Origin: Schmidtea polychroa
Taxonomy: Eukaryota
Direction of reading: 5' to 3'
Assembly (NCBI GenBank): GCA_044892525.1
Contig: CM097885.1
Location: forward strand, 23,312,186-23,376,000
Length of the DNA: 63,815 bases
Of the stretch, positions 15,801 through 51,800 are shown piece after piece (within the stretch, counting starts at the first letter, position 1; each line of letters begins with the position of its first letter). Below the pieces are notes generated by a model. That model saw only the letters and a program-made list of their open reading frames with translations. It was not told the DNA's origin and did no database searches. The position numbers were made by a program, and so were the translations under genes.

Positions 15801-18800
15801 TTAGAATGTAATAATAAATAAATCATAATAAAAAATATTATTTATTTACTTATTTCGTTATTGGCAGTCAAAGTGACAAAAGATCTGCATAACGTTTTTA
15901 AGTGACTCAAAACTACATTTCCATATATCAAAATATATTTTACATAAATTTTGTAGATAATGTAGATAAAGTGGATAATATAAATAACACAACAAATTTT
16001 CATTTTTAGTCTCTACAACACCAACAACTTCGAAAACTCCTCAAACTACTACAACACCATCAGGTTATATATATTGGATGATTATTATTAAAAAAAAATT
16101 GATTCAGTTTGCAAAGAAACTTTAACATTAGTTTCAACAAAAGAATTTATAAGTGAAATATTAACAAGTAGCAACTACAAAAACAAAGAAAATATTATTA
16201 CGGAATCTTGGACTTCGAATGTAGAGGATGCCACACCAAATATAAACATTAATTTCTACAAGCCAATAACAATAACAGAAATAATCTTTGAAAATCAGTC
16301 CAACATCGGAAGATACACGTATGCTATCTACATTGAATGCAAATAATTCAGTTAATCTTTGATGATAGGATAATTATAACAGAGCCAAACACTTTTCAAT
16401 CCAAAATACTTAAAGCTAACGAAGAAAATAAAAGTTATAATGAAAAAATTAAAACTGAAAATATCAACATCCAAATTATAAGTTTATCAATAACGTTAAT
16501 CAAAAGAAATAAATCGGATGAAGTAAAATTAAAATTAATAATTATTGGATGCATAAAGAAAGGAACAAAAGAAACAACCACAACAATATCGACTCAAACT
16601 CCCACTGTTACAAGTACTGGCTCAAGTTCACAACCGATATCATCAACAACGACCTCAAGAATAACAGGTAAAATATCGAAATTATAATAATTTACACATT
16701 TTTACCATTTCTTTGGATTGGCCTTGTAACTTGGTTTTTTAATCTTTCTTTTTATGTTTGACAATGTTGACGTGTTTCAGGTTGCAAAGAAAAGTCTGTT
16801 TTGATTTCAACTAAAGAGTATGTGAAAGAAATCGTTGTACCGAAAAATGGAACATCAGAAACCAGTTTGATAACCGATATTTGGAATATAACTGTAATTA
16901 AAACAGAACCGAAATTCGAAATCAAATTCTACAAACCTGTCATCGTTACGAAGATCAAATTTGAAAACATCGTGAATATCCAGACATTCAAGTAAAATTT
17001 GATTATTGAAATCAAAGATCGAAAATGTTAATATAAACTTTAGTGTACTTGTTCTTTATGAGAACGAAAAAGACTATAAAACATTCGAAACAGGACTTAA
17101 TGTGAAATACATAAAGGAATACGAGGAAATTGAAAGGATTGTTGAGAAAGTGTCAGCTATAAAGATTACATTTATTTTGACATCTCTGAAAGAGAAAGTG
17201 TCATTAAAAGTAACAATTGAAGGATGCGGAGAACAGGAAACGACTACAGAAAAATCTACAACAATATCTATTTCCAGTCCGACTGTGTCATTAACTAGAA
17301 CTGGAACTAAATCGACAGAGTCTACTGCCACGACCACACCATATTCTTCGCCATCAACAACAACTGGATCCACGACCTCTGAAACTACAACGACTCAATC
17401 AACATTGACAGGAACTATAACGACTCCTTCATCTACGGCCACGACCACAACATATTCCTCGCCATCAACAACAACAGGATCCACGACCTCTGAAACTACA
17501 ACGACTCAATCAACATCGACAGGAACTATAACGACTCCTTCATCTACGGCCACGACCACAACATATTCCTCGCCATCAACAACAACTGGATCAACGACCT
17601 CTGAAACTACAACGACTCAATCAACATCGACAGGAACTATTACGACTCCTTCATCTACGGCCACGACCACAATGTATTCCTCGCCATCAACAACAACTGG
17701 ATCCACGACCTCTGGAACTACAACGACTGAATCAACATCGACAGGAACTGCTACGACTTCATCATCAATTGTCACTAGTAGTGAATCATCTTCTTCAACA
17801 ACAACTACAACTCAAACTCCCACTGTTACAAGTACTGGCTCAAGTTCTCAACCGATATCATCAACAACGACCTCAAGAATAACAGGTAAAATATCGAAAT
17901 TATAATAATTTTCACATTTTAACCATTTCTTTGGATTGGCCTTGTAACTTGGTTTTTTAATCTTTCTTTTTATGTTTGACAATGTTGGCGTGTTTCAGGT
18001 TGCAAAGAAAAGTCTGTTTTGATTTCAACTAAAGAGTATGTGAAAGAAATCGTTGTACCGAAAAATGGAACATCTGAAACCAGTTTGATAACCGATATTT
18101 GGAATATAACTGTAATTAAAACAGAACCGAAATTCGAAATCAAATTCTACAAACCTGTCATCGTTACGAAGATCAAATTTGAAAACATCGTGAATATCCA
18201 GACATTCAAGTAAAATTTGATTATTGAAATCAAAGATCGAAAATGTTAATATAACCTTTAGTGTACTTGTTCTTTATGAGAACGAAAAAGACTATAAAAC
18301 ATTCGAAACAGGACTTAATGTGAAATACATAAAGGAATACGAGGAAATTGAAAGGATTGTTGAGAAAGTGTCAGCTATAGAGATTACATTTATTTTGACA
18401 TCTCCGAAAGAGAAAGTGTCATTAAAAGTAACAATCGAAGGATGCGGAGAACAGGAAACGACTACAGAAAAATCTACAACAATATCTATTTCCAGTCCGA
18501 CTGTGTCATTAACTAGAACTGGAACTAAATCGACAGAGTCTACTGCCACGACCACACCATATTCTTCGCCATCAACAACAACTGGATCCACGACCTCTGA
18601 AACTACAACGACTCAATCAACATCGACAGGAACTATAACGACTCCTTCATCTACGGCCACGACCACAACATATTCCTCGCCATCAACAACAACTGGATCA
18701 ACGACCTCTGAAACTACAACGACTCAATCAACATCGACAGGAACTATAACGACTCCTTCATCTACGGCCACGACCACAACATATTCCTCGCCATCAACAA

Positions 18801-21800
18801 CAACAGGATCCACGACCTCTGAAACTACAACGACTCAATCAACATCGACAGGAACTATAACGACTCCTTCATCTACGGCCACGACCACAACATATTCCTC
18901 GCCATCAACAACAACTGGATCAACGACCTCTGAAACTACAACGACTCAATCAACATCGACAGGAACTATAACGACTCCTTCATCTACGGCCACGACCACA
19001 ATATATTCCTCGCCATCAACAACAACTGGATCCACGACCTCTGGAACTACAACGACTGAATCAACATCGACAGGAACTGCTACGACTTCATCATCAATTG
19101 TCACTAGTAGTGAATCATCTTCTTCAACAACAACTACAACTCAAACTCCCACTCTTACAAGTACTGGCTCAAGTTCTCAACCGATATCATCAACAACGAC
19201 CTCAAGAATAACAGGTAAAATATCGAAATTATAATAATTTTCACATTTTAACCATTTCTTTGGATTGGCCTTGTAACTTGGTTTTTTAATCTTTCTTTTT
19301 ATGTTTGACAATGTTGGCGTGTTTCAGGTTGCAAAGAAAAGTCTGTTTTGATTTCAACTAAAGAGTATGTGAAAGAAATCGTTGTACCGAAAAATGGAAC
19401 ATCTGAAACCAGTTTGATAACCGATATTTGGAATATAACTGTAATTAAAACAGAACCGAAATTCGAAATCAAATTCTACAAACCTGTCATCGTTACGAAG
19501 ATCAAATTTGAAAACATCGTGAATATCCAGACATTCAAGTAAAATTTGATTATTGAAATCAAAGATCGAAAATGTTAATATAACCTTTAGTGTACTTGTT
19601 CTTTATGAGAACGAAAAAGACTATAAAACATTCGAAACAGGACTTAATGTGAAATACATAAAGGAATACGAGGAAATTGAAAGGATTGTTGAGAAAGTGT
19701 CAGCTATAAAGATTACATTTATTTTGACATCTCCGAAAGAGAAAGTGTCATTAAAAGTAACAATCGAAGGATGCGGAGAACAGGAAACGACTACAGAAAA
19801 ATCTACAACAATATCTATTTCCAGTCCGACTGTGTCATTAACTAGAACTGGAACTAAATCGACAGAGTCTACTGCCACGACCACACCATATTCTTCGCCA
19901 TCAACAACAACTGGATCCACGACCTCTGAAACTACAACGACTCAATCAACATCGACAGGAACTATAACGACTCCTTCATCTACGGCCACGACCACAACAT
20001 ATTCCTCGCCATCAACAACAACAGGATCCACGACCTCTGAAACTACAACGACTCAATCAACATCGACAGGAACTATAACGACTCCTTCATCTACGGCCAC
20101 GACCACAACATATTCCTCGCCATCAACAACAACTGGATCAACGACCTCTGAAACTACAACGACTCAATCAACATCGACAGGAACTATAACGACTCCTTCA
20201 TCTACGGCCACGACCACAATATATTCCTCGCCATCAACAACAACTGGATCCACGACCTCTGGAACTACAACGACTGAATCAACATCGACAGGAACTGCTA
20301 CGACTTCATCATCAATTGTCACTAGTAGTGAATCATCTTCTTCAACAACAACTACAACTCAAACTCCCACTGTTACAAGTACTGGCTCAAGTTCTCAACC
20401 GATATCATCAACAACGACCTCAAGAATAACAGGTAAAATATCGAAATTATAATAATTTTCACATTTTAACCATTTCTTTGGATTGGCCTTGTAACTTGGT
20501 TTTTTAATCTTTCTTTTTATGTTTGACAATGTTGGCGTGTTTCAGGTTGCAAAGAAAAGTCTGTTTTGATTTCAACTAAAGAGTATGTGAAAGAAATCGT
20601 TGTACCGAAAAATGGAACATCTGAAACCAGTTTGATAACCGATATTTGGAATATAACTGTAATTAAAACAGAACCGAAATTCGAAATCAAATTCTACAAA
20701 CCTGTCATCGTTACGAAGATCAAATTTGAAAACATCGTGAATATCCAGACATTCAAGTAAAATTTGATTATTGAAATCAAAGATCGAAAATGTTAATATA
20801 ACCTTTAGTGTACTTGTTCTTTATGAGAACGAAAAAGACTATAAAACATTCGAAACAGGACTTAATGTGAAATACATAAAGGAATACGAGGAAATTGAAA
20901 GGATTGTTGAGAAAGTGTCAGCTATAAAGATTACATTTATTTTGACATCTCCGAAAGAGAAAGTGTCATTAAAAGTAACAATCGAAGGATGCGGAGAACA
21001 GGAAACGACTACAGAAAAATCTACAACAATATCTATTTCCAGTCCGACTGTGTCATTAACTAGAACTGGAACTAAATCGACAGAGTCTACTGCCACGACC
21101 ACACCATATTCTTCGCCATCAACAACAACTGGATCCACGACCTCTGAAACTACAACGACTCAATCAACATCGACAGGAACTATAACGACTCCTTCATCTA
21201 CGGCCACGACCACAACATATTCCTCGCCATCAACAACAACAGGATCCACGACCTCTGAAACTACAACGACTCAATCAACATCGACAGGAACTATAACGAC
21301 TCCTTCATCTACGGCCACGACCACAACATATTCCTCGCCATCAACAACAACTGGATCAACGACCTCTGAAACTACAACGACTCAATCAACATCGACAGGA
21401 ACTATAACGACTCCTTCATCTACGGCCACGACCACAATATATTCCTCGCCATCAACAACAACTGGATCCACGACCTCTGGAACTACAACGACTGAATCAA
21501 CATCGACAGGAACTGCTACGACTTCATCATCAATTGTCACTAGTAGTGAATCATCTTCTTCAACAACAACTACAACTCAAACTCCCACTGTTACAAGTAC
21601 TGGCTCAAGTTCTCAACCGATATCATCAACAACGACCTCAAGAATAACAGGTAAAATATCGAAATTATAATAATTTTCACATTTTAACCATTTCTTTGGA
21701 TTGGCCTTGTAACTTGGTTTTTTAATCTTTCTTTTTATGTTTGACAATGTTGGCGTGTTTCAGGTTGCAAAGAAAAGTCTGTTTTGATTTCAACTAAAGA

Positions 21801-24800
21801 GTATGTGAAAGAAATCGTTGTACCGAAAAATGGAACATCTGAAACCAGTTTGATAACCGATATTTGGAATATAACTGTAATTAAAACAGAACCGAAATTC
21901 GAAATCAAATTCTACAAACCTGTCATCGTTACGAAGATCAAATTTGAAAACATCGTGAATATCCAGACATTCAAGTAAAATTTGATTATTGAAATCAAAG
22001 ATCGAAAATGTTAATATAACCTTTAGTGTACTTGTTCTTTATGAGAACGAAAAAGACTATAAAACATTCGAAACAGGACTTAATGTGAAATACATAAAGG
22101 AATACGAGGAAATTGAAAGGATTGTTGAGAAAGTGTCAGCTATAAAGATTACATTTATTTTGACATCTCCGAAAGAGAAAGTGTCATTAAAAGTAACAAT
22201 CGAAGGATGCGGAGAACAGGAAACGACTACAGAAAAATCTACAACAATATCTATTTCCAGTCCGACTGTGTCATTAACTAGAACTGGAACTAAATCGACA
22301 GAGTCTACTGCCATGACCACACCATATTCTTCGCCATCAACAACAACTGGATCCACGACCTCTGAAACTACAACGACTCAATCAACATCGACAGGAACTA
22401 TAACGACTCCTTCATCTACGGCCACGACCACAACATATTCCTCGCCATCAACAACAACTGGATCAACGACCTCTGAAACTACAACGACTCAATCAACATC
22501 GACAGGAACTATTACGACTCCTTCATCTACGGCCACGACCACAAAATATTCCTCGCCATCAACAACAACTGGATCCACGACCTCTGGAACTACAACGACT
22601 GAATCAACATCGACAGGAACTGCTACGACTTCATCATCAATTGTCACTAGTAGTGAATCATCTTCTTCAACAACAACTACAACTCAAACTCCCACTGTTA
22701 CAAGTACTGGCTCAAGTTCTCAACCGATATCATCAACAACGACCTCAAGAATAACAGGTAAAATATCGAAATTATAATAATTTTCACATTTTAACCATTT
22801 CTTTGGATTGGCCTTGTAACTTGGTTTTTTAATCTTTCTTTTTATGTTTGACAATGTTGGCGTGTTTCAGGTTGCAAAGAAAAGTCTGTTTTGATTTCAA
22901 CTAAAGAGTATGTGAAAGAAATCGTTGTACCGAAAAATGGAACATCTGAAACCAGTTTGATAACCGATATTTGGAATATAACTGTAATTAAAACAGAACC
23001 GAAATTCGAAATCAAATTCTACAAACCTGTCATCGTTACGAAGATCAAATTTGAAAACATCGTGAATATCATGACATTCAAGTAAAATTTGATTATTGAA
23101 ATCAAAGATCGAAAATGTTAATATAAACTTTAGTGTACTTGTTCTTTATGAGAACGAAAAAGACTATAAAACATTCGAAACAGGACTTAATGTGAAATAC
23201 ATAAAGGAATACGAGGAAATTGAAAGGATTGTGGAGAAAGTGTCAGCTATAAAGATTACATTTATTTTGACATCTCCGAAAGAGAAAGTGTCATTAAAAG
23301 TAACAATCGAAGGATGCGGAGAACAGGAAACGACTACAGAAAAATCTACAACAATATCTATTTCCAGTCCGACTGTGTCATTAACTAGAACTGGAACTAA
23401 ATCGACAGAGTCTACTGCCACGACCACACCATATTCTTCGCCATCAACAACAACTGGATCCACGACCTCTGAAACTACAACGACTCAATCAACATCGACA
23501 GGAACTATAACGACTCCTTCATCTACGGCCACGACCACAACATATTCCTCGCCATCAACAACAACTGGATCAACGACCTCTGAAACTACAACGACTCAAT
23601 CAACATCGACAGGAACTATTACGACTCCTTCATCTACGGCCACGACCACAAAATATTCCTCGCCATCAACAACAACTGGATCCACGACCTCTGGAACTAC
23701 AACGACTGAATCAACATCGACAGGAACTGCTACGACTTCATCATCAATTGTCACTAGTAGTGAATCATCTTCTTCAACAACAACTACAACTCAAACTCCC
23801 ACTGTTACAAGTACTGGCTCAAGTTCTCAACCGATATCATCAACAACGACCTCAAGAATAACAGGTAAAATATCGAAATTATAATAATTTTCACATTTTA
23901 ACCATTTCTTTGGATTGGCCTTGTAACTTGGTTTTTTAATCTTTCTTTTTATGTTTGACAATGTTGGCGTGTTTCAGGTTGCAAAGAAAAGTCTGTTTTG
24001 ATTTCAACTAAAGAGTATGTGAAAGAAATCGTTGTACCGAAAAATGGAACATCTGAAACCAGTTTGATAACCGATATTTGGAATATAACTGTAATTAAAA
24101 CAGAACCGAAATTCGAAATCAAATTCTACAAACCTGTCATCGTTACGAAGATCAAATTTGAAAACATCGTGAATATCATGACATTCAAGTAAAATTTGAT
24201 TATTGAAATCAAAGATCGAAAATGTTAATATAAACTTTAGTGTACTTGTTCTTTATGAGAACGAAAAAGACTATAAAACATTCGAAACAGGACTTAATGT
24301 GAAATACATAAAGGAATACGAGGAAATTGAAAGGATTGTGGAGAAAGTGTCAGCTATAAAGATTACATTTATTTTGACATCTCCGAAAGAGAAAGTGTCA
24401 TTAAAAGTAACAATCGAAGGATGCGGAGAACAGGAAACGACTACAGAAAAATCTACAACAATATCTATTTCCAGTCCGACTGTGTCATTAACTAGAACTG
24501 GAACTAAATCGACAGAGTCTACTGCCACGACCACACCATATTCTTCGCCATCAACAACAACTGGATCCACGACCTCTGAAACTACAACGACTCAATCAAC
24601 ATCGACAGGAACTATAACGACTCCTTCATCTACGGCCACGACCACAACATATTCCTCGCCATCAACAACAACAGGATCCACGACCTCTGAAACTACAACG
24701 ACTCAATCAACATCGACAGGAACTATAACGACTCCTTCATCTACGGCCACGACCACAACATATTCCTCGCCATCAACAACAACTGGATCAACGACCTCTG

Positions 24801-27800
24801 AAACTACAACGACTCAATCAACATCGACAGGAACTATTACGACTCCTTCATCTACGGCCACGACCACAATATATTCCTCGCCATCAACAACAACTGGATC
24901 CACGACCTCTGGAACTACAATGACTGAATCAACATCGACAGGAACTGCTACGACTTCATCATCAATTGTCACTAGTAGTGAATCATCTTCTTCAACAACA
25001 ACTACAACTCAAACTCCCACTGTTACAAGTACTGGCTCAAGTTCTCAACCGATATCATCAACAACGACCTCAAGAATAACAGGTAAAATATCGAAATTAT
25101 AATAATTTTCACATTTTAACCATTTCTTTGGATTGGCCTTGTAACTTGGTTTTTTAATCTTTCTTTTTATGTTTGACAATTTTGGCGTGTTTCAGGTTGC
25201 AAAGAAAAGTCTGTTTTGATTTCAACTAAAGAGTATGTGAAAGAAATCGTTGTACCGAAAAATGGAACATCTGAAACCAGTTTGATAACCGATATTTGGA
25301 ATATAACTGTAATTAAAACAGAACCGAAATTCGAAATCAAATTCTACAAACCTGTCATCGTTACGAAGATCAAATTTGAAAACATCGTGAATATCATGAC
25401 ATTCAAGTAAAATTTGATTATTGAAATCAAAGATCGAAAATGTTAATATAAACTTTAGTGTACTTGTTCTTTATGAGAACGAAAAAGACTATAAAACATT
25501 CGAAACAGGACTTAATGTGAAATACATAAAGGAATACGAGGAAATTGAAAGGATTGTTGAGAAAGTGTCAGCTATAAAGATTACATTTATTTTGACATCT
25601 CCGAAAGAGAAAGTGTCATTAAAAGTAACAATCGAAGGATGCGGAGAACAGGAAACGACTACAGAAAAATCTACAACAATATCTATTTCCAGTCCGACTG
25701 TGTCATTAACTAGAACTGGAACTAAATCGACAGAGTCTACTGCCACGACCACACCATATTCTTCGCCATCAACAACAACTGGATCCACGACCTCTGAAAC
25801 TACAACGACTCAATCAACATCGACAGGAACTATAACGACTCCTTCATCTACGGCCACGACCACAACATATTCCTCGCCATCAACAACAACAGGATCCACG
25901 ACCTCTGAAACTACAACGACTCAATCAACATCGACAGGAACTATAACGACTCCTTCATCTACGGCCACGACCACAACATATTCCTCGCCATCAACAACAA
26001 CTGGATCAACGACCTCTGAAACTACAACGACTCAATCAACATCGACAGGAACTATTACGACTCCTTCATCTACGGCCACGACCACAATATATTCCTCGCC
26101 ATCAACAACAACTGGATCCACGACCTCTGGAACTACAACGACTGAATCAACATCGACAGGAACTGCTACGACTTCATCATCAATTGTCACTAGTAGTGAA
26201 TCATCTTCTTCAACAACAACTACAACTCAAACTCCCACTCTCACAAGTACTGGCTCAAGTTCACAACCTATATCATCAACAACGACCTCAAGAATAACAG
26301 GTAAAATATCGAAATTATAATAATTTTCACATTTTAACCATTTCTTTGGATTGGCCTTGTAACTTGGTTTTTTAATCTTTCTTTTTTTGTTTGACAATGT
26401 TGGCGTGTTTCAGGTTGCAAAGAAAAGTCTGTTTTGATTTCAACTAAAGAGTATGTGAAAGAAATCGTTGTACCGAAAAATGGAACATCTGAAACCAGTT
26501 TGATAACCGATATTTGGAATATAACTGTAATTAAAACAGAACCGAAATTCGAAATCAAATTCTACAAACCTGTCATCGTTACGAAGATCAAATTTGAAAA
26601 CATCGTGAATATCATGACATTCAAGTAAAATTTGATTATTGAAATCAAAGATCGAAAATGTTAATATAAACTTTAGTGTACTTGTTCTTTATGAGAACGA
26701 AAAAGACTATAAAACATTCGAAACAGGACTTAATGTGAAATACATAAAGGAATACGAGGAAATTGAAAGGATTGTTGAGAAAGTGTCAGCTATAAAGATT
26801 ACATTTATTTTGACATCTCCGAAAGAGAAAGTGTCATTGAAAGTAACAATCGAAGGATGCGGAGAACAGGAAACGACTACAGAAAAATCTACAACAATAT
26901 CTATTTCCAGTCCGACTGTGTCATTAACTAGAACTGGAACTAAATCGACAGAGACTACACCATATTCTTCGCCATCAACAACAACTGGATCCACGACCTC
27001 TGAAACTACAACGACTCAATCAACATCGACAGGAACTATAACGACTCCTTCATCTACGGCCACGACCACAACATATTCCTCGCCATCAACAACAACTGGA
27101 TCAACGACCTCTGAAACTACAACGACTCAATCAACATCGACAGGAACTATTACGACTCCTTCATCTACGGCCACGACCACAATATATTCCTCACCATCAA
27201 CAACAACTGGATCCACGACCTCTGGAACTACAACGACTCAATCAACATCGACAGGAACTGCTACGACTTCATCATCAATTGTCACTAGTAGTGAATCATC
27301 TTCTTCAACAACAACCACAACTCAAACTCCAACTGTTACAAATACTGGATCAAGTTCGCAACCGATTTCCTCGACACGTTCTGTATCTTTAACTCCTTCT
27401 CAAAGTAGTTCATCCATTAGTTCATCTAAAAACACTTTATCATCCAGTGTGTCGACTCCTGGTTTGTTATTTTTCATTTTAAATATAAATATTTTTTTAT
27501 TTCTTTAGCTCCTTGCAAAATTGTGGAAACGTTTGAGTATACTGATATTTTAGCTTCACACCAAGTTCTTTCCTTAGTTACCGGAGTCGATCGTTCAGTT
27601 ATGCTTTCTGCTTTACGTTCTGGTTCTGTAGTAGAGTTTTATCCAAATAAATTTTCTCTGACGTTCACATTTGATGGAAATTCAGCCCTTCCTTTTATAT
27701 CCAAGGTTTAGAATTTATTTTTTGAGATATTTTTTATTTATTTTATTTCAGATATTTATTGGAGAAAATATTAAATCTGTTGTTGTGACCTATTATGATT

Positions 27801-30800
27801 CAAATTCCATTGGTCATTACTCACATTTATCGTCACCCAATAATGGCAAAGTCTTTTTGGAAATAAACACAAACATTTCATCCCTATCTATCAGTGAACT
27901 CTCGGTTTTTGAAAATCAAACTGTTGCATATTTTTCAATGAAAGTATTCGGATGTTTTAAAGTCTCTTTTTGTATTGTTGAAGGTAAAAAGTATTGGGTA
28001 TGATTATCATTTATTTTTTTAATATTTAAATGAAATATTAAATTATTCAAAATTTATGTAATCAGTCTTTATTCTGTTTCTTCGAGATATGCTTTTACTT
28101 CTGTTTATATTATTATAAGAACTTTTATTTCTTCCAATTTCACCACTGATTATTTTGCCATTGAATTTATTAAAAAGACAGCTTGAAGACTATAAATCAG
28201 TAATATATCGATGTTTTTTTGATACTCGCGAATTTTCGGCACTCCTTTTTCAAGTGAATTTTGTGAATTCAATTTATTATTAAAAGTTTAATCTTATCAG
28301 TATAAAATTCCTATTCGTCTTTTGATGCATTTTTATATATCCATAAATTGTTTTTCCAAAATATCCTTAAATGGATCCTTAACAATAAAGAAAAGTTAAG
28401 TTTTCATCCTATAAATCTGACAGTGATTCCTATACTGAAGCCCGCGCTCCGTTGAGGTCCGCGAAGAGATTTTATTGTAAATGTTGTGAATGGAATTTTT
28501 TAGATTTCCAAGCACTTTTACGGTTTAAATAATGACTTCATATTTCGCTGTGCTTTTTAATCACGATTTATTTGTTATAAATGGATAAATTGAACAGTTT
28601 TATTTTAATTTCGAAATAAGAAAACAATCGACAGATTTTTATCTTTGTATTATTAATATTTTATATTTATTTTATATATTTTAAAATTCTTAATTTAGCA
28701 GTTTACGGCGTTTAATATATAAAGTATTTCACAAGACTAATTCTTATTATAAATAATTCCTTTAATCGTAGGAAATCACTGATTTCATTTAGCATTGTTT
28801 AAAACTTATTAGAATTCAGTTATAAGTCATTTAGCATCTTTAACCCTTTCGCGGACGCACTTTTTTAGTTGCTGTTGCAGAACGCAGTAGTATGACGTGT
28901 ATACACGTCATTGTCCATTAAAGGGTTAAATATAGTATTTTTATTAATAATAAGCTTGTTTTGTAAACCACGAGGCTTCTTATAAAATTATTATCATAAA
29001 TTGCAAACAGCAATAAATTTATCATGAGAATTCTTTTGATTTTAATTTAAAACAATTTTAATTAATGATATTTAATTTTTAAGGGGACTATCATTCAAGA
29101 AATTTAAAAAAATTGGGAACCACTAGTATATAGTATGACTTTTCCGTAACTGTTTGATGGGAATCGTGATACAATTCAAAGCGAAATTGGTGTTGATGGT
29201 GTGTATGAATAGTGAATGAATAATAAAATTCAACTAAAACCATAATAAATTTTTAATTAAAATCATTCGTTAAAATAAGTCATTAAAAATGAGTCTAAAA
29301 TTTTGTACAATTTATATCAATCTATATTCAACATAAATTACAGAGTTTGTATTTATTGATAAGTAAAGTTTTTTGTTTTTGAAAAGATTTAACCGAGTTA
29401 GTTTTTCTTTTACGTAGATATAAAAGAAATTAGAGGAAGATTGTTATCAATATCAAGACTTAAAGAATTTTATTTTGATTATAGTTTTAAAGTTCTACAC
29501 ACAACTGAACTAATGACTGCTATTATGTCTAACATTTTTGAGATTTAACTAACAAAAGGTTGTTCGGTATACAAATTAATCTTCATTTTATCATCCTTAT
29601 CCATTCCTATATTCGTTTGATTGTATTTTAGGATTATTTATGACTTGAACTTTTATTCTGTTTAATCTATTTTATAAGGTTTGCTCTTTTAACCTTTAGA
29701 AAAATCAAACATGAATCAAAAAATGATATAAAATCATTCATAATAATGTATTATGAATAGGTAATTAGTTCAAGTTTTTATATTAATAATTTGTATTAAA
29801 TTCACGGACATTTGAATATGTTAAATTAAATTTTATATTCAATCTAGAACCAGCAAATCATTTCTTTCGAACCTTTCAGTGCATGTATGAGAAAATCATG
29901 TATTTGTGACAATGGAGAAGAAAGGTGCCAGAGATTAGACAAATCAAATTGTGCGAATTGTACTGAAGTAAGATAATTTTCTTTTTAATATAAGTTATTC
30001 GAAATTTTCTTTTATAATTATTCATTTAATCTGCTTCTAATGCTTGATATGTCTTCCTCACCAATCAAAAGTTCAAACAGAACAGTAAGAGTACGCCACA
30101 AAATTGAAAAATTCCAAATATTTTTTTTATTTTATTAAGAAAAAAAATCTCTGAAGCATAATACAAATATAATAGTCTTTCTTTTTATGACAATAAGTAA
30201 TCTAATAATTAAATTGCTTAATTAATAATTATCGTTAATGGTTTGATACGTGAGTATGTTATTGTATGTTTAAAACATTTCACATATTTCATGTTCATTA
30301 TTATATATTAGTCTTCGATCCTAACGAGATAAATACTTGAACTGTTATGTCATAAAATTGATATTAGAAAATTTTAGATCTTGAATTATTTAGCATATCA
30401 ATAAAAAATGTAATTACATTATCGATACAATCTTAATCAAGTGTGACACGACAGATCTTAGTCTATCTTATATGATCTTATATGAGAATTATCATTTCCG
30501 ATACTCAATTTCCAACGANNNNNNNNNNNNNNNNNNNNNNNNNNNNNNNNNNNNNNNNNNNNNNNNNNNNNNNNNNNNNNNNNNNNNNNNNNNNNNNNNN
30601 NNNNNNNNNNNNNNNNNNNNNNNNNNNNNNNNNNNNNNNNNNNNNNNNNNNNNNNNNNNNNNNNNNNNNNNNNNNNNNTGTAGCATTTAATACAGAAGTC
30701 TGTATGAATATGTTTTGGGGCCCGAAATTCTTCTGGGCATTCAAAATAATGTCGGTTTGAAATCAAATGTAAACAGCTTAATCTGCCAATATATTTGAAA

Positions 30801-39800: not shown

Positions 39801-42800
39801 TACATAAGAAAGTTAAACAAATATATATGTGAAAATAATTTGCGAGATTGGCAAAACAAATCCGTTAAATTTCTTATGATAGATCTTCAAAATGTATTAA
39901 ACGAATAGACATGCAACCGGATATGTAAAAGCTCAGTCTCCAATTTTGAAGGTGAAACGATATGTCCAGCAAACATATAGAGAAAAATACATGATTTCAC
40001 GAAATCCATTTATTTCATTATACGAAAACAAGTCTAATCTTCTAAAATTCATTAATGAAAAACATATAAATCATTGCAAAGGATGATCACAAATCTTTTG
40101 GTTAAAAACAATAAATATGATAACTACCTTGTAAAAAATTACAAACAGCCAAAATTAATTTTAACAATGTAAAAATAAAGAATTGATATCAAAACATGAA
40201 AATATGTAAATAATTTCTAGCATTATTTACTATGTTTGACAATGTTAACGTGCTTCAGGTTGCAAAGAAAAGTCTGTTTTGATTTCAACTAAAGAGTATG
40301 TGAAAGAAATCGTTGTACCGAAAAATGGAACATCAGAAACCAGTTTGATAACCGATATTTGGAATATAACTGTAATTAAAACAGAACCGAAATTCGAAAT
40401 CAAATTCTACAAACCTGTCATCGTTACGAAGATCAAATTTGAAAACATCGTGAATATCCAGACATTCAAGTAAAATTTGATTATTGAAATCAAAGATCGA
40501 ACATGATAATATAAACTTTAGTGTGCTTGTTCTTTATGAGAACGAAAAAGACTATAAAACATTCGAAACAGGACTAAATGTGAAATACGTAAAGGAATAC
40601 GAGGAAATTGAAAGGATTGTTGAAAAAGTGTCAGCTATAAAGATTACATTTATTTTGACATCTCCGAAAGAGAAAGTGTCATTAAAAGTAACAATCGAAG
40701 GATGCGGAGAACAGGAAACGACTACAGAAAAATCTACAACAATATCTATTTCCAGTCCGACTGTGTCATTAACTAGAACTGGAACTAAATCGACAGAGAC
40801 CACACCATATTCTTCGCCATCAACAACAACTGGATCCACGACCTCTGAAACTACAACGACTCAATCAACATCGACAGGAACTATTACGACTCCTTCATCT
40901 ACGGCCAAGACCACAACATATTCCTCGCCATCAACAACAACTGGATCCACGACCTCTGAAACTACAACGACTCAATCAACATCGACAGGAACTATTACGA
41001 CTCCTTCATCTACGGCCACGACCACAACATATTCCTCGCCATCAACAACAACTGTATCCACGACCTCTGAAACTACAACGACTCAATCAAAATCGACAGG
41101 AACTATTACGACTCCTTCATCTACGGCCACGACCACAACATATTTCTCGCCATCAACAACAACTGGATCCACGACCTCTGAAACTACAACGACTCAATCA
41201 ACATCGACAGGAACTATTACAACTCCTTCATCTACGGCCACAACCACAAAATATTCCTCGCCATCAACAACAACTGGATCCACGACCTCTGAAACTACAA
41301 CAACTCAATCAACATCGACAGGAACTATTACGACTCCTTCGTCTACGGCCACGACCACAACATATTTCTCGCCATCAACAACAACTATATCCACAACCTC
41401 TGAAACTACAACGACTCAATCAACATCGACAGGAACTATTACGACTCCTTCATCTACTTCCACGACTACAATATATTCCTCGCCATCAACAACAACTGGA
41501 TCCAAGTCCTCTGGAACTACAACGACTCAATCTACATCGACAGGAACTGCTACGACTTCATCATCAATTGTCCCTAGTAGTGAATCATCTTCTTCAACAA
41601 CAACTACAACTCAAACTCCCACTGTTACAAGTACTGGCTCAAGTTCACAACCGATATCATCAACAACGACCTCAAGAATAACAGGTAAAATATCGAAATT
41701 ATAATAATTTTCACATTTTAACCATTTCTTTGGATTGGCCTTGTAACTTGGTTTTTTAATCTTTCTTTTTATGTTTGACAATGTTGACGTGTTTCAGGTT
41801 GCAAAGAAAAGTCTGTTTTGATTTCAACTAAAGAGTATGTGAAAGAAATCGTTGTACCGAAAAATGGAACATCAGAAACCAGTTTGATAACCGATATTTG
41901 GAATATAACTGTAATTAAAACAGAACCGAAATTCGAAATCAAATTCTACAAACCTGTCATCGTTACGAAGATCAAATTTGAAAACATCGTGAATATCCAG
42001 ACATTCAAGTAAAATTTGATTATTGAAATCAAAGATCGAAAATGTTAATATAAACTTTAGTGTACTTGTTCTTTATGAGAACGAAAAAGACTTTAAAACA
42101 TTCGAAACAGGACTTAATGTGGAATATGTAAAGGAATACGAGGAAATTGAAAGGATTGTTGAGAAAGTGTCAGCTATAAAGATTACATTTATTTTGACAT
42201 CTCCGAAAGAGAAAGTGTCATTAAAAGTAACAATCGAAGGATGCGGAGAACAGGAAACGACTACAGAAAAATCTACAACAATATCTATTTCCAGTCCGAC
42301 TGTGTCATTAACTAGAACTGGAACTAAATCGACAGAGTCTACTGCCACGACCACACCATATTCTTCGCCATCAACAACAACTGGATCCACGACCTCTGAA
42401 ACTACAACGACTCAATCAACATCGACAGCAACTATTACGACTCCTTCATCTACGGCCACGACCACAACATATTCCTCGCCATCAACAACAACTGGATCCA
42501 CGACCTCTGAAACTACAACGACTCATTCAACATCGACAGGAACTATTACGACTCCTTCATCTACGGCCACGACCACAACATATTCCTCACCATCAACATC
42601 AACTGGATCCACGACCTCTGAAACTACAACGACTCAATCAACATCGACAGGAACTATTAGGACTCCTTCATCTACGGCCACGACCACAACATATTCCTCA
42701 CCATCAACAACAACTGGATCTACGACTACTGAAACTACAACTACTCATTCAACATCGACAGGAACTATTACGACTCCTTCATCTACGGCCACGACCACAA

Positions 42801-45800
42801 CATATTCCTCACCATCAACAACAACTGGATCCACGACCTCTGAAACTACAACGACTCAATCAACATCGACAGGAACTATTACGACTCCTTCATCTACGGC
42901 CACGACCACAACATATTTCTCGCCATCAACAACAACTGGATCCACGACCTCTGAAACTACAACGACTCAATCAACATCGACAGGAACTATTACGACTCCT
43001 TCATCTACGGCCACGACCACAATATCTTCCTCGCCATCAACAACAACTGGATCCACGTCCTCTGGGACTACAACGACTCAATCAACATCGACAGGAACTA
43101 TTACGACTCCTTCATCTACGGCCACGACCACAATATCTTCCTCGCCATCAACAACAACTGGATCCACGACCTCTGAAACTACAACGACTCAATCAACATC
43201 GACAGGAACTATAACGACTCCTTCATCTACGGCCACGACCACAATATATTCATCGCCATCAACAACAACTGGATCCACGACCTCTGAAACTACAACGACT
43301 CAATCAACATCGACAGGAACTATAACGACTCCTTCATCTACGGCCATGACCACAATATATTCCTCGCCATCAACAACAACTGGATCCACATCCTCTGGGA
43401 CTACAACGACTCAATCAACATCGACAGGAACTATTACGACTCCTTCATCTACGGCCACGACCACAATATCTTCCTCGCCATCAACAACAACTGGATCCAC
43501 ATCCTCTGGGACTACAACGACTCAATCAACATCGACAGGAACTGCTACGACTTCATCATCAATTGTCCCTAGTAGTGAATCATCTTCTTCAACAACAACT
43601 ACAACTCAAACTCCCACTGTTACAAGAACTGGCTCAAGTTCACAACCGATATCATCAACTACGACCTCAAGAATAACAGGTAAAATATCGAAATTATAAT
43701 AATTTTCACATTTTAACCATTTCTTTGGATTGGCCTTGTAACTTGGTTTTTTAATCTTTCTTTTTATGTTTGACAATGTTGACGTGTTTCAGGTTGCAAA
43801 GAAAAGTCTGTTTTGATTTCAACTAAAGAGTATGTGAAAGAAATCGTTGTACCGAAAAATGGAACATCAGAAACCAGTTTGATAACCGATATTTGGAATA
43901 TAACTGTAATTAAAACAGAACCGAAATTCGAAATCAAATTCTACAAACCTGTCATCGTTACGAAGATCAAATTTGAAAACATCGTGAATATCCAGACATT
44001 CAAGTAAAATTTGATTATTGAAATCAAAGATCGAAAATGTTAATATAAACTTTAGTGTACTTGTTCTTTATGAGAACGAAAAAGACTTTAAAACATTCGA
44101 AACAGGACTTAATGTGGAATATGTAAAGGAATACGAGGAAATTGAAAGGATTGTTGAGAAAGTGTCAGCTATAAAGATTACATTTAGTTTGACATCTCCG
44201 AAAGAGAAAGTGTCATTAAAAGTAACAATCGAAGGATGCGGAGAACAGGAAACGACTACAGAAAAATCTACAACAATATCTATTTCCAGTCCGACTGTGT
44301 CATTAACTAGAACTGGAACTAAATCGACAGAGACCACACCATATTCTTTGCCATCAACAACAACTGGATCCACGACCTCTGAAACTACAACGACTCATTC
44401 AACATCGACAGGAACTATTACGACTCCTTCATCTACGGCCACGACCACAACATATTCCTCACCATCAACATCAACTGGATCCACGACCTCTAAAACTACA
44501 ACGACTCAATCAACATCGACAGGAACTATTAGGACTCCTTCATCTACGGCCACAACCACAACATATTCCTCACCATCAACATCAACTGGATCCACCACCT
44601 CTAAAACTACAACGACTCAATCAACATCGACAGGAACTATTAGGACTCCTTCATCTACGGCCACGACCACAATATATTCCTCACCATCAACAACAACTGG
44701 ATCCACGACTACTGAAACTACAACGACTCATTCAACATCGACAGGAACTATTACGACTCCTTCATCTACGGCCACGACCACAACATATTCCTCACCATCA
44801 ACAACAACTGGATCCACGACCTCTGAAACTACAACGACTCAATCAACATCGACAGGAACTATTACGACTCCTTCATCTACGGCCACGACCACAACATATT
44901 TCTCGCCATCAACAACAACTGGATCCACGACCTCTGAAACTACAACGACTCAATCAACATCGACAGGAACTATTACGACTCCTTCATCTACGGCCACGAC
45001 CACAACATCTTCCTCGCCATCAACAACAACTGGATCCACGTCCTCTGGGACTACAACGACTCAATCAACATCGACAGGAACTATTGCGACTCCTTCATCT
45101 ACGGCCACGACCACAATATCTTCCTCGCCATCAACAACAACTGGATCCACGACCTCTGAAACTACAACGACTCAATCAACATCGACAGGAACTATAACGA
45201 CTCCTTCATCTACGGCCACGACCACAATATATTCCTCGCCATCAACAACAACTGGATCCACGACCTCTGAAACTACAACGACTCAATCAACATCGACAGG
45301 AACTATTACGACTCCTTCATCTACGGCCACGACCACAATATCTTCCTCGCCATCAACAACAACTGGATCCACATCCTCTGGGACTACAACGACTCAATCA
45401 ACATCGACAGGAACTGCTACGACTCCATCATCAATTGTCCCTAGTAGTGAATCATCTTCTTCAACAACAACTACAATTCAAACTCCCACTGTTACAAGTA
45501 CTGGCTCAAGTTCACAACCGATATCATCAACAACGACCTCAAGAATAACAGGTAAAATATCGAAATTATAATAATTTTCACATTTTAACCATTTCTTTGG
45601 ATTGGCCTTGTAACTTGGTTTTTTAATCTTTCTTTTTATGTTTGACAATGTTGACGTGTTTCAGGTTGCAAAGAAAAGTCTGTTTTGATTTCAACTAAAG
45701 AGTATGTGAAAGAAATCGTTGTACCGAAAAATGGAACATCAGAAACCAGTTTGATAACCGATATTTGGAATATAACTGTAATTAAAACAGAACCGAAATT

Positions 45801-48800
45801 CGAAATCAAATTCTACAAACCTGTCATCGTTACGAAGATCAAATTTGAAAACATCGTGAATATCCAGACATTCAAGTAAAATTTGATTATTGAAATCAAA
45901 GATCGAAAATGTTAATATAAACTTTAGTGTACTTGTTCTTTATGAGAACGAAAAAGACTTTAAAACATTCGAAACAGGACTTAATGTGGAATACGTAAAG
46001 GAATACGAGGAAATTGAAAGGATTGTTGAGAAAGTGTCAGCTATAAAGATTACATTTATTTTGACATCTCCGAAAGAGAAAGTGTCATTAAAAGTAACAA
46101 TCGAAGGATGCGGAGAACAGGAAACGACTACAGAAAAATCTACAACAATATCTATTTCCAGTCCGACTGTGTCATTAACTAGAACTGGAACTAAATCGAC
46201 AGAGACCACACCATATTCTTCGCCATCAACAACAACTGGATCCACAACCTCTGAAATTACAACGACTCAATCAACATCGACAGGAACTGCTACGACTCCA
46301 TCATCAATTGTCCCTAGTAGTGAATCATCTTCTTCAACAACAACTACAACTCAAACTCCCACTCTTACAAGTACTGGCTCAAGTTCACAACCGATATCAT
46401 CAACAACGACCTCAAGAATAACAGGTAAAATATCGAAATTATAATAATTTTCACATTTTAACCATTTCTTTGGATTGGCCTTGTAACTTGGTTTTTTAAT
46501 CTTTCTTTTTATGTTTGACAATGTTGACGTGTTTCAGGTTGCAAAGAAAAGTCTGTTTTGATTTCAACTAAAGAGTATGTGAAAGAAATCGTTGTACCGA
46601 AAAATGGAACATCAGAAACCAGTTTGATAACCGATATTTGGAATATAACTGTAATTAAAACAGAACCGAAATTCGAAATCAAATTCTACAAACCTGTCAT
46701 CGTTACGAAGATCAAATTTGAAAACATCGTGAATATCCAGACATTCAAGTAAAATTTGATTATTGAAATCAAAGATCGAAAATGTTAATATAAACTTTAG
46801 TGTACTTGTTCTTTATGAGAACGAAAAAGACTTTAAAACATTCGAAACAGGACTTAATGTGGAATATGTAAAGGAATACGAGGAAATTGAAAGGATTGTT
46901 GAGAAAGTGTCAGCTATAAAGATTACATTTAGTTTGACATCTCCGAAAGAGAAAGTGTCATTAAAAGTAACAATCGAAGGATGCGGAGAACAGGAAACGA
47001 CTACAGAAAAATCTACAACAATATCTATTTCCAGTCCGACTGTGTCATTAACTAGAACTGGAACTAAATCGACAGAGACCACACCATATTCTTCGCCATC
47101 AACAACAACTGGATCCACGACCTCTGAAACTACAACGACTCATTCAACATCGACAGGAACTATTACGACTCCTTCATCTACGGCCACGACCACAACATAT
47201 TCCTCACCATCAACATCAACTGGATCCACGACCTCTAAAACTACAACGACTCAATCAACATCGACAGGAACTATTAGGACTCCTTCATCTACGGCCACAA
47301 CCACAACATATTCCTCACCATCAACATCAACTGGATCCACCACCTCTAAAACTACAACGACTCAATCAACATCGACAGGAACTATTAGGACTCCTTCATC
47401 TACGGCCACGACCACAATATATTCCTCACCATCAACAACAACTGGATCCACGACTACTGAAACTACAACGACTCATTCAACATCGACAGGAACTATTACG
47501 ACTCCTTCATCTACGGCCACGACCACAACATATTCCTCACCATCAACAACAACTGGATCCACGACCTCTGAAACTACAACGACTCAATCAACATCGACAG
47601 GAACTATTACGACTCCTTCATCTACGGCCACGACCACAACATATTTCTCGCCATCAACAACAACTGGATCCACGACCTCTGAAACTACAACGACTCAATC
47701 AACATCGACAGGAACTATTACGACTCCTTCATCTACGGCCACGACCACAACATCTTCCTCGCCATCAACAACAACTGGATCCACGTCCTCTGGGACTACA
47801 ACGACTCAATCAACATCGACAGGAACTATTGCGACTCCTTCATCTACGGCCACGACCACAATATCTTCCTCGCCATCAACAACAACTGGATCCACGACCT
47901 CTGAAACTACAACGACTCAATCAACATCGACAGGAACTATAACGACTCCTTCATCTACGGCCACGACCACAATATATTCCTCGCCATCAACAACAACTGG
48001 ATCCACGACCTCTGAAACTACAACGACTCAATCAACATCGACAGGAACTATTACGACTCCTTCATCTACGGCCACGACCACAATATCTTCCTCGCCATCA
48101 ACAACAACTGGATCCACATCCTCTGGGACTACAACGACTCAATCAACATCGACAGGAACTGCTACGACTCCATCATCAATTGTCCCTAGTAGTGAATCAT
48201 CTTCTTCAACAACAACTACAATTCAAACTCCCACTGTTACAAGTACTGGCTCAAGTTCACAACCGATATCATCAACAACGACCTCAAGAATAACAGGTAA
48301 AATATCGAAATTATAATAATTTTCACATTTTAACCATTTCTTTGGATTGGCCTTGTAACTTGGTTTTTTAATCTTTCTTTTTATGTTTGACAATGTTGAC
48401 GTGTTTCAGGTTGCAAAGAAAAGTCTGTTTTGATTTCAACTAAAGAGTATGTGAAAGAAATCGTTGTACCGAAAAATGGAACATCAGAAACCAGTTTGAT
48501 AACCGATATTTGGAATATAACTGTAATTAAAACAGAACCGAAATTCGAAATCAAATTCTACAAACCTGTCATCGTTACGAAGATCAAATTTGAAAACATC
48601 GTGAATATCCAGACATTCAAGTAAAATTTGATTATTGAAATCAAAGATCGAAAATGTTAATATAAACTTTAGTGTACTTGTTCTTTATGAGAACGAAAAA
48701 GACTTTAAAACATTCGAAACAGGACTTAATGTGGAATACGTAAAGGAATACGAGGAAATTGAAAGGATTGTTGAGAAAGTGTCAGCTATAAAGATTACAT

Positions 48801-51800
48801 TTATTTTGACATCTCCGAAAGAGAAAGTGTCATTAAAAGTAACAATCGAAGGATGCGGAGAACAGGAAACGACTACAGAAAAATCTACAACAATATCTAT
48901 TTCCAGTCCGACTGTGTCATTAACTAGAACTGGAACTAAATCGACAGAGACCACACCATATTCTTCGCCATCAACAACAACTGGATCCACGACCTCTGAA
49001 ATTACAACGACTCAATCAACATCGACAGGAACTGCTACGACTCCATCATCAATTGTCCCTAGTAGTGAATCATCTTCTTCAACAACAACTACAACTCAAA
49101 CTCCCACTCTTACAAGTACTGGCTCAAGTTCACAACCGATATCATCAACAACGACCTCAAGAATAACAGGTAAAATATCGAAATTATAATAATTTTCACA
49201 TTTTAACCATTTCTTTGGATTGGCCTTGTAACTTGGTTTTTTAATCTTTCTTTTTATGTTTGACAATGTTGACGTGTTTCAGGTTGCAAAGAAAAGTCTG
49301 TTTTGATTTCAACTAAAGAGTATGTGAAAGAAATCGTTGTACCGAAAAATGGAACATCTGAAACCAGTTTGATAACCGATATTTGGAATATAACTGTAAT
49401 TAAAACAGAACCGAAATTCGAAATCAAATTCTACAAACCTGTCATCGTTACGAAGATCAAATTTGAAAACATCGTGAATATCATGACATTCAAGTAAAAT
49501 TTGATTATTTAAATCAAATATCGAACATGATAATATAAACTTTAGTGTACTTGTTCTTTATGAGAACGAAAAAGACTTTAAAACATTCGAAACAGGACTT
49601 AATGTGGAATACGTAAAGGAATACGAGGAAATTGAAAGGATTGTTGAGAAAGTGTCAGCTATAAAGATTACATTTATTTTGACATCTCCGAAAGAGAAAG
49701 TGTCATTGAAAGTAACAATCGAAGGATGCGGGGAAAAGGAGACAACAACAGAAAAATCTACAACCAAAACTATATCCAGTACTACCTCATCTCCAGCAAG
49801 CACTATTTCACAGCGAGTTACTTCTTCTTCAACACCATCTATATTCGGTTATTTTTTCCATTTTAATATCTTTTTTTTTCTTTTTAATTATTTTTCTCTT
49901 TCATGAGCTTTTCTGATTCTTTGTGTTTTTTATTTTTTTTCGTTTTTTTAGCATACACCCTATTCCTTGATTCGAATGGTGGGATTTATATTCATTTTTT
50001 GCGATCTTTTTATTTTTTGAAATTTTCTGATTTACAACTAAATAATTTAATTAAGAGATATTTTATTTATATTTTCACTCCCGCATAACATTTTGAATTA
50101 GGATAATGTCGGTTTTATTTTTCTCGAACTTTCGAGGCTGAATGCCGAAAATAATAAAGGTCTTAATGGAGTAATTGGTTTTCCATTTGGCGATAGGAAA
50201 TAATATTTCTTACTAAGCACCATAATATAAAGAATCTTATGTTTCATCGCTTTTACTTGATAGGCCAGACTACCTGATGAAGAAAGACAAATGTTACGTT
50301 TCCGTAATTTAGATCGCTATATTGATATATGTTTTAAATTAAATAGACATTGTGCTTCTTGTCTCATAATTATTATTCAACAAATCCCTTCTTTAAATGA
50401 AAACATTTTTGATTCCACCTAACAAAACTTATTGAAAAATCAAAATAACAATTTAAATAAATTTTTAACAAATGCAGATTTTCAAAATTTAAAGAATATA
50501 TTTTATTAGATCTTTCAAAATGATAAAATCAATTTTTTACCCTTCTGGGGTTTTTCGCGACCCACACTTTCAGCACCGCTGATATACACGACGATTGTAA
50601 ACTAATTTTTCAGAAATTAAAATAAATAGAAAAGTTACAATCATATTCAGTTTAATTTCATTCAAAAACATTTCAATTCAGATTTTTAGTTTTATCATTT
50701 GTTATGTTGACTATGAAAATATTTTCCATCGCTCTGGTCAATTTCATGCATTCAATATATGATTTTAGATTTGTCATTTCTCTCCGATATTATTTACACT
50801 TGTCGATTAGCTCTTGATTTTTGGTTTGACAAGATTTAGATTTTTATTCATTCATCTTTTATCTTTATTCATTTATCTTTTCATTTTATTTACTCTTTTT
50901 CCCCTTTAATATTTTGTTCTTCCTTTATTCTCAGTTTTTTATTTCACTATTTTTATTTAATTTCGTTAATTTAAATTTGATTTATTAAGTTTCTTCTATT
51001 TTTATTCTTTTATTTAGGTTGTCTGGAAGTCCTTAGATTATCTACTTTTGATTATGTGGAAAAGACTTTTACATCAAGTATGATAGATTTTGATATTCCT
51101 ATTTTGGGTCAATGGGAATCCTGGAAAAACGATTCTAATCCATTCATCAAAATTATCTTCAAACGCAATTTATTTATTACTCAAATTCAACTCGATAAAA
51201 CAAATAATATTCGGAAATATTCGTAATCATTATGCCATTTTAATGAAATGTAATATTATTTAATTTAGTCTTTTCGTTCAATATGGGGGAAACAGTTCTT
51301 GGTATTCCATAGCGGAAAGCAACCTGTTAAATCCTGATTCTCCGGGCACTGTTAATATCAGTTTATTGGTATCAGCTGTGAAAATTGAAATTGTAAAAGA
51401 AAATATTGATGAATCCGTCAGAGCTTTTCTGTTAATATTCGGTTGTGAGAAGCAAGTAATTTCTACGGAATCCACTCCTATATCAAGGATAACAGAACAC
51501 ACCGAGTCAACACCATTAAATGTAACCACTGTATCGGAACAACATACAACTATTGAAACTACTTTAACCACAACTCTACCGATTAAGAAAGAAAACTGCT
51601 CATTTGTTTTGGAATCAAAATCGAGAATCAAACATGGAAATTGTATTTCCATCGAAGAAATCGAAACCGGTTATTGTTTTGGAGGATGTGCAAGTCGAAG
51701 TTCGATTGACCATTTAACTGGTTCTGTGGATAGCAAATGTTTATGTTGTCAGCCGTCTAAAATTAAGAAAAGCTTAAGATTTACCTGTGGTTAGTTTCTT

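Follow-up and report, generated by a model that had tools for sequence, protein, structure and literature searches.

The 63,815-nucleotide stretch of Schmidtea polychroa DNA analysed here (GenBank assembly GCA_044892525.1, contig CM097885.1, forward-strand positions 23,312,186 to 23,376,000; hereafter the window, with all positions counted from its first letter) is probably the centre of one very large plus-strand gene for a putatively secreted, gel-forming-mucin-like glycoprotein, which has grown by nested duplication of an exon-intron cassette. An earlier inspection of the letters of this DNA (the original prediction) had pointed to tandem repeats nested within one another, in which the introns, too, are homogenised. 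Our analysis measured these repeats, compared their introns with their silent sites, and asked what kind of protein they would encode. The AT-rich assembly from which the window is taken comprises 781 Mb in scaffolds of up to at least 247 Mb, and the window has a G+C content of 19-41%.

The smallest level of repetition is a 111-bp unit that encodes 37 residues rich in Ser, Thr and Pro. It lies inside an exon, just where it had been predicted; Tandem Repeats Finder (TRF) reports 14 arrays of it at 93-97% matches, and a custom scan counts 74 units in 15 blocks. The units are carried by modules of 0.87-2.0 kb, which form two arrays on the plus strand: array 1 (16592..27461) consists of nine near-identical modules, M01-M09, and array 2 (40231..49745) of seven, M10-M16. 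Within a module, the tail of a Pro/Thr/Ser-rich (PTS) region is followed by a 113-bp intron, a 211-bp exon that encodes the first half of a domain, a 52-bp intron and a long exon, which contains the second half of the domain and then the 111-bp units (three to five of them in array 1). Measured from one 52-bp intron to the next, the periods of array 1 are 1218, 1329, 1218, 1218, 1107, 1107, 1218 and 1218 bp, that is, 885 + n x 111 with n = 3, 4, 3, 3, 2, 2, 3 and 3. Those of array 2 are 1539, 1995, 1872, 873, 1872 and 873 bp, or 873 or 885 + n x 111 with n = 6, 10, 9, 0, 9 and 0, and the difference between 873 and 885 is a 12-bp (four-codon) indel in the first unit. These values agree exactly with every n that had been listed for the two arrays. 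In array 1, the units are position-specific and form the strings ABCD, ACBCD and ACD, and the modules there differ in length by interior units gained or lost. The claim that the spacers between domains are quantised in length likewise holds, in that they vary in steps of 37 residues. Jointly, the 16 modules encode approximately 5,950 residues. Their long exons consist of 50-71% Thr, Ser and Pro, with the exception of M16 (33%), and a long Pro/Thr/Ser tandem-repeat region, as in gel-forming mucins, is thus present.

The two short introns recur in almost invariant form, as had been noted. The 113-bp intron has phase 1 and is found in 15 copies, one at 17886..17998 and the others starting at 16668, 19215, 20433, 21651, 22758, 23865, 25083, 26301, 41685, 43680, 45552, 46425, 48297 and 49170, all on the plus strand; the 52-bp intron has phase 2 and is found in 16 copies, one at 18210..18261 and the others starting at 16992, 19539, 20757, 21975, 23082, 24189, 25407, 26625, 40470, 42009, 44004, 45876, 46749, 48621 and 49494, also on the plus strand. 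No copy of either shows more than four mismatches, and GT..AG is kept throughout. The 113-bp intron contains an in-frame stop seven codons in, and in the 52-bp intron a stop codon overlaps the donor. Both short stretches must therefore be removed for the frame to continue, because read-through meets a stop at once. Every one of the 16 modules has an open 69-codon exon and an open long exon of 100-539 codons in compatible phases, such that 32 exons follow each other without stop or frameshift and 31 GT..AG pairs are intact. Array 2 is a partial exception at its very beginning, since its homology to the other modules starts in the last 29 nt of a 113-bp-intron copy, of which the acceptor is retained (the AG of M10 at 40257-40258) without the donor. 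Furthermore, a 462-residue protein of a relative, termed P0001 here (from MetaClust/UniParc, found by a word-index search), is spliced at junctions homologous to both introns. The predicted exon-intron-exon-intron structure of the module is thus supported by GT..AG in every copy, by stops in both introns, by conserved phases and by homologous splice junctions in P0001, and the modules can be regarded as exon-intron cassettes.

The repetition extends to larger scales. At 44004..49493 (plus strand), a 2,745-bp super-repeat is present in two copies, each of which combines a module with nine extra units and a module with none. The two copies (44004-46748 and 46749-49493) differ at 5 of 2,745 positions and have identical unit-type strings, and between about 43500 and 47000 the sequence is nearly the same as that 2,745 bp further on. 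In array 1, M03 and M04 show no difference across 1,218 bp. The arrays themselves, approximately 13 kb apart, are copies as well, with a mean difference of 1.7%. The original prediction of three nested tiers was thus right with respect to the nesting, but not the number: there are four, namely the 111-bp unit, the module, the 2,745-bp two-module block and the whole array. Some variants occur in both arrays, in a mosaic pattern. The first module of array 1, M01, has variants in common with M10-M15 at offsets -222 and -135, and the last modules of the two arrays, M09 and M16, share variants at offsets -385, -11/-10 and +214. This sharing could reflect block duplication of an ancestral array, but also conversion or exchange between the arrays.

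Repeats of this kind raise the question of how far the assembly can be trusted. It is conceivable, though in our view unlikely, that the architecture is real, but that the numbers of modules and units or the near-identity of the copies are products of repeat assembly and polishing. The window contains three runs of N (13786-13938, 30519-30678 and 56893-57076) and is thus scaffolded sequence, and stretches like the identical M03 and M04 or the super-repeat with its five differences are hard to assemble and easily homogenised. However, the copies have not been merged into a single consensus: their variants are structured by position, with block-wise sharing, diverged edges and ordered unit types (ABCD, ACBCD, ACD), and the frame and the splice sites are kept in every copy. 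Also, no stray copies are found on unplaced contigs, and a genome search revealed no further module copies elsewhere in the 781-Mb assembly. As to the gap at 30519-30678, it falls between the arrays and touches no module, 111-bp unit or intron copy: array 1 has its last 111-bp unit 3.2 kb ahead of it, and the first exon of array 2 follows 9.6 kb after it. Because it sits outside both arrays, none of the periods depends on it. It does mean that arrays 1 and 2 lie on different contigs which have been joined by scaffolding.

The domain that alternates with the spacers is a beta-rich stretch of approximately 135 residues with a Cys at either end. The 113-bp intron precedes it, and the 52-bp intron divides it into two halves. 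With a local profile hidden Markov model (HMM), 20 copies were found in the window, the 16 homogenised ones and four old ones (D0a, D0b, Dt1 and Dlast), all on the plus strand. D0a (10305..10751; E 4e-6 for the first half and 5e-3 for the second) is followed by a short Thr-rich stretch, has a phase-1 acceptor directly before its first Cys and is 30% identical to the last domain (E 6e-7). D0b (16108..16552) adjoins array 1 upstream and shows 42% identity to the repeated exon (E 4e-10) and 33% to the last domain (E 2e-7); its 51-nt intron at 16320-16370 has the place and phase of the 52-bp intron. Dt1 (27509..27980, with exons 27509-27705 and 27752-27980) closes array 1 and has short introns in matching places; its HMM E-values of 2e-20 and 1e-42 have to be read in light of the fact that Dt1 itself was among the seeds. 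Dlast (51018..51450, with exons 51018-51222 and 51269 to about 51450 around a 46-nt phase-2 intron) is reached from M16 over a 1,170-bp phase-1 intron (49848-51017) and is 88-90% identical to residues 132-280 of P0001. A Cys after the phase-1 acceptor and a Gly-Cys near the end recur in D0a, D0b, the repeated copy, Dt1 and Dlast, with two Cys near the end in Dt1. In F5/8C domains, a disulfide between the Cys residues at the two ends ties the termini together.

Pfam detects no family in the exons of the repeated copy, and the nature of the domain was therefore approached through the relative's protein. P0001 takes in the second half of one repeated copy and a short spacer, and then the last diverged copy in full and the cystine-knot region. 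For P0001:138-280, AlphaFold returned a model with a predicted local distance difference test score (pLDDT) of 78.9 and a predicted template-modelling score (pTM) of 0.73. The alignment used for folding contained P0001, the metagenome protein P0004 and the window exons as separate partial rows; second-half exon fragments, which MAFFT misplaces, were left out. The best 50 solved structures in a Foldseek search with this model were all galactose-binding-domain-like (E approximately 1e-6, template-modelling scores of 0.6-0.7), and include IFT25, the muskelin discoidin domain, DOC/APC10, CBM32 and factor VIII C2. VIA-align gave Z-scores of 11.6-13.8 with root-mean-square deviations of 2.4-3.0 A over 112-123 residues, the best being Z 13.8 at 2.6 A over 117 residues, and PF00754 is found in the majority of the closest ESM Atlas clusters. 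The predicted structure thus shows the last copy in P0001 as a very diverged discoidin/CBM32-like (F5/8 type C, galactose-binding-like) beta-sandwich of the eight-stranded jelly-roll type. The repeated copy is connected to the folded one by transitive similarity (42% to D0b, which in turn is 33% identical to the last copy), and the two share their length, their Cys positions, and the positions and phases of their introns; a direct BLASTP comparison of the repeated exon with the last domain was non-significant (E 0.057). The original prediction had spoken of a binding domain. Our evidence from AlphaFold, Foldseek, VIA-align and ESM Atlas argues for a fold class, discoidin/CBM32-like, that fits this term, whereas binding itself lies outside this evidence.

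The domain family appears to be almost private to this lineage. When P0001:138-280 was compared by HMMER to 1.84 billion cluster representatives, the only credible matches were P0001 itself and P0004, which carries two copies of the domain. Two further candidates were rejected. P0002, an aphid protein of 3,945 residues with an E-value of 1e-21, contains 14 identical coiled-coil-like repeats that sum up weak scores and is not a relative, and P0003, an array of FN3 domains, likewise is a repeat artefact.

With respect to the genome, the sole match to the domain profile outside the locus is a half-domain at G000:C2:1474059-1474238 on the minus strand (E 2e-6). It lies approximately 50 kb from a cluster of VWD exons on the same strand (C2:1525468-1532282), and the two are probably parts of a paralogous mucin-like gene. 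At G000:C3:74071430-74071855 and C3:74095183-74095608 (plus strand), two VWD matches of equal score are found in 5,277-codon open frames that are 23.7 kb apart. This looks like a duplicated VWD gene with a giant exon.

The arrays are preceded by a mucin-like head and followed by a candidate cystine-knot tail, all on the plus strand. Three N-terminal VWD domains are present, and all of them exceed the Pfam cut-off in a genome scan, though the first is partial. Of VWD 1, the C-terminal part lies at 49..456 (Pfam VWD E 3e-6, profile positions 115-153; in the genome scan 49-327, profile positions 75-153), and the start of the gene is upstream of the window. The exons of VWD 2 lie at 2492..3076 (E 8e-10, profile positions 1-64; in the genome scan 2600-3076, profile positions 1-137) and VWD 3 at 4405..4845 (E 5e-27; in the genome scan 112 bits, profile positions 1-151). 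A C8 domain follows at 6402..6788 (E 2e-18), while no TIL match was obtained in the open frames scanned with Pfam, a scan that was not exhaustive for the head. At the other end, an exon at 51624..51790 that ends in a donor is cystine-knot-like (CTCK; Pfam Cys_knot E 0.006), and its Cys pattern is conserved in P0001.

Between the arrays, we find candidates for a series of Cys-rich exons on the plus strand. X1 (29880..29967, phase-0 donor) is the last candidate before the gap at 30519-30678, which would fall into an intron, and X2 (31993..32302, 12 Cys, phase-0 acceptor and phase-1 donor) lies on its other side; as the nearest candidates flanking the gap, the two match in phase. They are followed by X3 (34200..34381, phase-1 acceptor), by X4 (37953-38170) and X5 (38217-38349), which are proposed from their sequence and phases, and by X6, a small Thr-rich exon (38402-38469) with a phase-1 donor that is compatible with the start of array 2 at its first exon. 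Pfam finds no family for X1-X5, and a likeness of X4 to TIL, seen by eye, is supported by no tool. The splice phases fit from X1 to X2 and X3, from X4 via X5 and X6 to M10, and from M16 to Dlast. In the interval 27981-29879, the phase-1 donor of Dt1 at 27980 misfits X1 at 29880, so that at least one exon or another donor is absent from the model.

This arrangement bears on whether array 2 and the cystine-knot end might be a separate transcription unit, or even come from elsewhere through a mis-join. The gap separates the arrays, Dt1 and X1 are out of phase, and the link between the arrays is provided by the assembly, not by transcripts. We nevertheless regard two genes as improbable. The region from 28 to 40 kb yielded no VWD domain, no start exon and nothing like a signal exon, and array 2 opens inside an intron copy that has an acceptor only. 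The chains X1-X2-X3 and X4-X5-X6-M10 are in phase, five fits that by chance would occur together in about 1 in 243 cases. Moreover, everything lies on a single strand, and the window offers neither a second tail for the VWD head nor a second head for the cystine-knot tail. Because no VWD or start-like exon precedes array 2, a single gene is the most economical reading, and we infer that both arrays belong to one plus-strand gene that extends across the scaffold join.

Why, then, are the introns so alike? Among the modules, the mean pairwise difference is 0.009 for the 113-bp intron and 0.013-0.021 for the 52-bp intron, as compared to 0.007 for the first domain exon and 0.016-0.019 for the second, and synonymous diversity (pS) is 0.012-0.041. 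The ratio of nonsynonymous to synonymous diversity (pN/pS) is 0.87 for the 111-bp units and 0.3-0.45 for the coding sequence of the domain. The latter is thus under mild purifying selection, so that selection on the protein is not absent. The introns, however, are as variable as silent sites, which means that nothing special preserves them. Divergence is also patterned along the arrays. It amounts to 0.7-1.3% on average within arrays as compared to the 1.7% between them, and within arrays it grows with distance (r = 0.42, a value reached in 0 of 5000 permutations). The edge modules M01, M09, M10 and M16 are the most diverged (1.1-3.5%), whereas interior modules are 0-0.65% apart. Furthermore, identity among the 16 copies is at least 98%, but falls to 72-74% when they are compared to the relative's copy in P0001; for the last domain, which has not been amplified, identity to the P0001 counterpart is 88-90%. 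The copies are thus more alike within the genome than between species, with one relative compared. Together, this supports recent tandem amplification and unequal crossing-over, which edge repeats escape, as the cause of the intron likeness, rather than constraint on the introns. The earlier suggestion that homogeneity of the introns stems from recency or crossover rather than from protein selection alone is thereby strengthened by the agreement between intron and synonymous diversity, the diverged edges and the correlation with distance.

The near-invariance of the introns could in principle also indicate that they are conserved for a function, for instance as splicing enhancers or because an RNA is embedded in them, and not because the copies are young. 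This we consider very improbable, since intron diversity is not below the synonymous diversity of the adjacent exons, and the variable sites per length are 4-10% in introns versus 1.4-9% in exons. Also, where the old copies D0b, Dt1 and Dlast have introns in corresponding places, these are unrelated in sequence and of other lengths (51, 46-47, 46 and 1,170 nt). Equally hard to credit is a decaying or untranscribed satellite that merely resembles a gene: the gene reading in S. polychroa does come from DNA, not from direct RNA, but the 32 open exons and 31 intact GT..AG pairs, a pN/pS below 1 in the domain, the spliced database protein P0001 of a relative covering the 3' end, and a word share near the exonic share in sequencing runs guessed to be RNA all speak against it.

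A number of points weigh against the reading as one giant mucin-like gene grown by cassette copying. The assembly is the only source for the copy number, for the very high identity of the copies and for the scaffold join at 30519-30678, and short-read polishing may make repeat copies look more alike than they really are. The model of the exon chain has two breaks, one from Dt1 to X1, which are out of phase, and one from X3 to X4. The Cys_knot match reaches 17.3 bits as compared to a cut-off of 24 bits, and the Pfam match of F5_F8_type_C (PF00754) to P0001:138-280 (E 3e-4) reaches 21.3 bits as compared to a gathering score of 28.2. The discoidin-like fold was modelled on the relative's diverged last copy, to which the repeated copy would be tied by similarity. 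Splicing of the 52- and 113-bp introns in S. polychroa itself is deduced from the DNA, and of the words sampled, only 9-21% occur in four sequencing runs guessed to be RNA. Lastly, a comparison with one relative does not separate true concerted evolution from amplification that followed the split of the two species.

With these reservations, we propose the following course of events for the single mucin-like gene. The ancestral unit would have had two introns and encoded a Cys-bracketed, discoidin-like bead of approximately 135 residues and, after it, a spacer rich in Ser, Thr and Pro. This unit would then have been amplified by tandem duplication and unequal crossing-over at nested scales, on the level of the 111-bp units, the modules, the 2.7-kb two-module block and the whole array, and the introns would have been copied along with the DNA. 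The equal likeness of introns and synonymous sites would be due to a recent origin of the copies or to exchange that continues among them. In the protein, the VWD/C8 head and the cystine-knot tail would bring about polymerisation by disulfides, the spacers would be O-glycosylated and keep the beads at distances of 100-475 residues that vary in steps of 37, and the beads would bind glycan or another, putative ligand.

The closest parallels in overall layout are mucin-like proteins of other protostomes. Proteins with VWD-C8-TIL units in which the F5_F8 domain (F5_F8_type_C) is characteristic have been described from lophotrochozoans, with insect hemolectin/hemocytin as a further case (Lang et al. 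2016, PMC4948705). The S. polychroa gene resembles them in the VWD/C8 head, the central discoidin-type domains and the PTS regions, which some of them have, and its cystine-knot-like exon would correspond to their cystine-knot end. It differs from them in that the discoidin-like domain is below the Pfam threshold and is present in 20 copies that alternate with PTS spacers, 16 of them in near-identical cassettes, and in that no second VWD block was found after the domains in the window. A literature search on gel-forming mucins with discoidin and VWD domains returned no match.

In the vertebrate mucins MUC2, MUC5AC and MUC5B, three VWD units at the N-terminus likewise precede a tandemly repeated PTS core in which small folded domains are interspersed; they end in a cystine knot, to which the cystine-knot-like exon of S. 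polychroa would correspond. A repeat-within-repeat organisation is known from vertebrate gel-forming mucins as well, in the super-repeats of MUC5B. In contrast, the interrupting domain of the vertebrate mucins is CysD (Mucin2_WxxW) and not a discoidin-like sandwich, and in S. polychroa homogenised introns divide the repeat core into 32 exons.

Genes whose tandem repeats comprise introns as well as exons include human LPA (kringle IV-2) and DMBT1 (SRCR/SID units). In spider Flag silk, in the exon-2 repeats of Schistosoma mansoni SmPoMuc and in Coccidioides SOWgp, repeats of this kind evolve in concert, with introns at least as homogeneous as the exons, which was attributed to unequal crossing-over and/or gene conversion, and divergence at the edges of the arrays is expected (PMC2576457). 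The locus described here has the features of this type, that is, exons and introns in the repeated unit, introns as alike as exons, and diverged edges. What sets it apart is that the cassette contains a whole, intron-split folded domain and an internal 111-bp variable-number tandem repeat, that there are extra tiers, and that the spacer is quantised in steps of 37 residues. Among flatworms, Mlig-ap2 of Macrostomum lignano is a very large secreted glycoprotein of temporary adhesion with interaction domains, vWD among them, at both ends and two central repeat arrays (PMC8621496). This is an analogy in layout only; the repeat units differ in length and content, and no sequence relationship is claimed. 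Copying of cassettes is thus a known evolutionary route for such genes, and the locus does not represent a new kind of biology. Particular to it are the divergence of the bead, its presence where vertebrate mucins carry CysD, and the very regular nesting at four levels.

The value of the locus lies in that it is a clean and readable case of how a giant mucus or glue protein grows by nested copying, in which the variants still show the order of events. It also indicates that a domain invisible to Pfam, in the predicted structure a discoidin-type sandwich, can stand in place of the vertebrate CysD. In practical terms, short-read and RNA sequencing analyses of the locus are confounded by the near-identical cassettes, and the locus is a good candidate for a length-polymorphic marker. 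A more speculative idea, to which we give little weight, is that the beads are lectins for O-glycans on the spacers of adjacent molecules, so that the protein would form non-covalent cross-links with itself, and unequal crossing-over would generate heritable differences among individuals or populations in the mesh size or stickiness of the mucus. If this were true, the gene would be a rapidly tunable material gene, in which the number and the spacing of the beads change in 37-residue steps.

Apart from the repeats, the window contains two open frames on the plus strand that are reminiscent of mobile elements. One, at 13205-13522, lies in the intron between D0a and D0b near the gap at 13786-13938 and reads like a fragment of a non-LTR (long terminal repeat) reverse transcriptase, with no Pfam match at E 0.1. 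The other, at 61411-61599, resembles by eye the DNA-binding part of a pogo/Tigger-type transposase.

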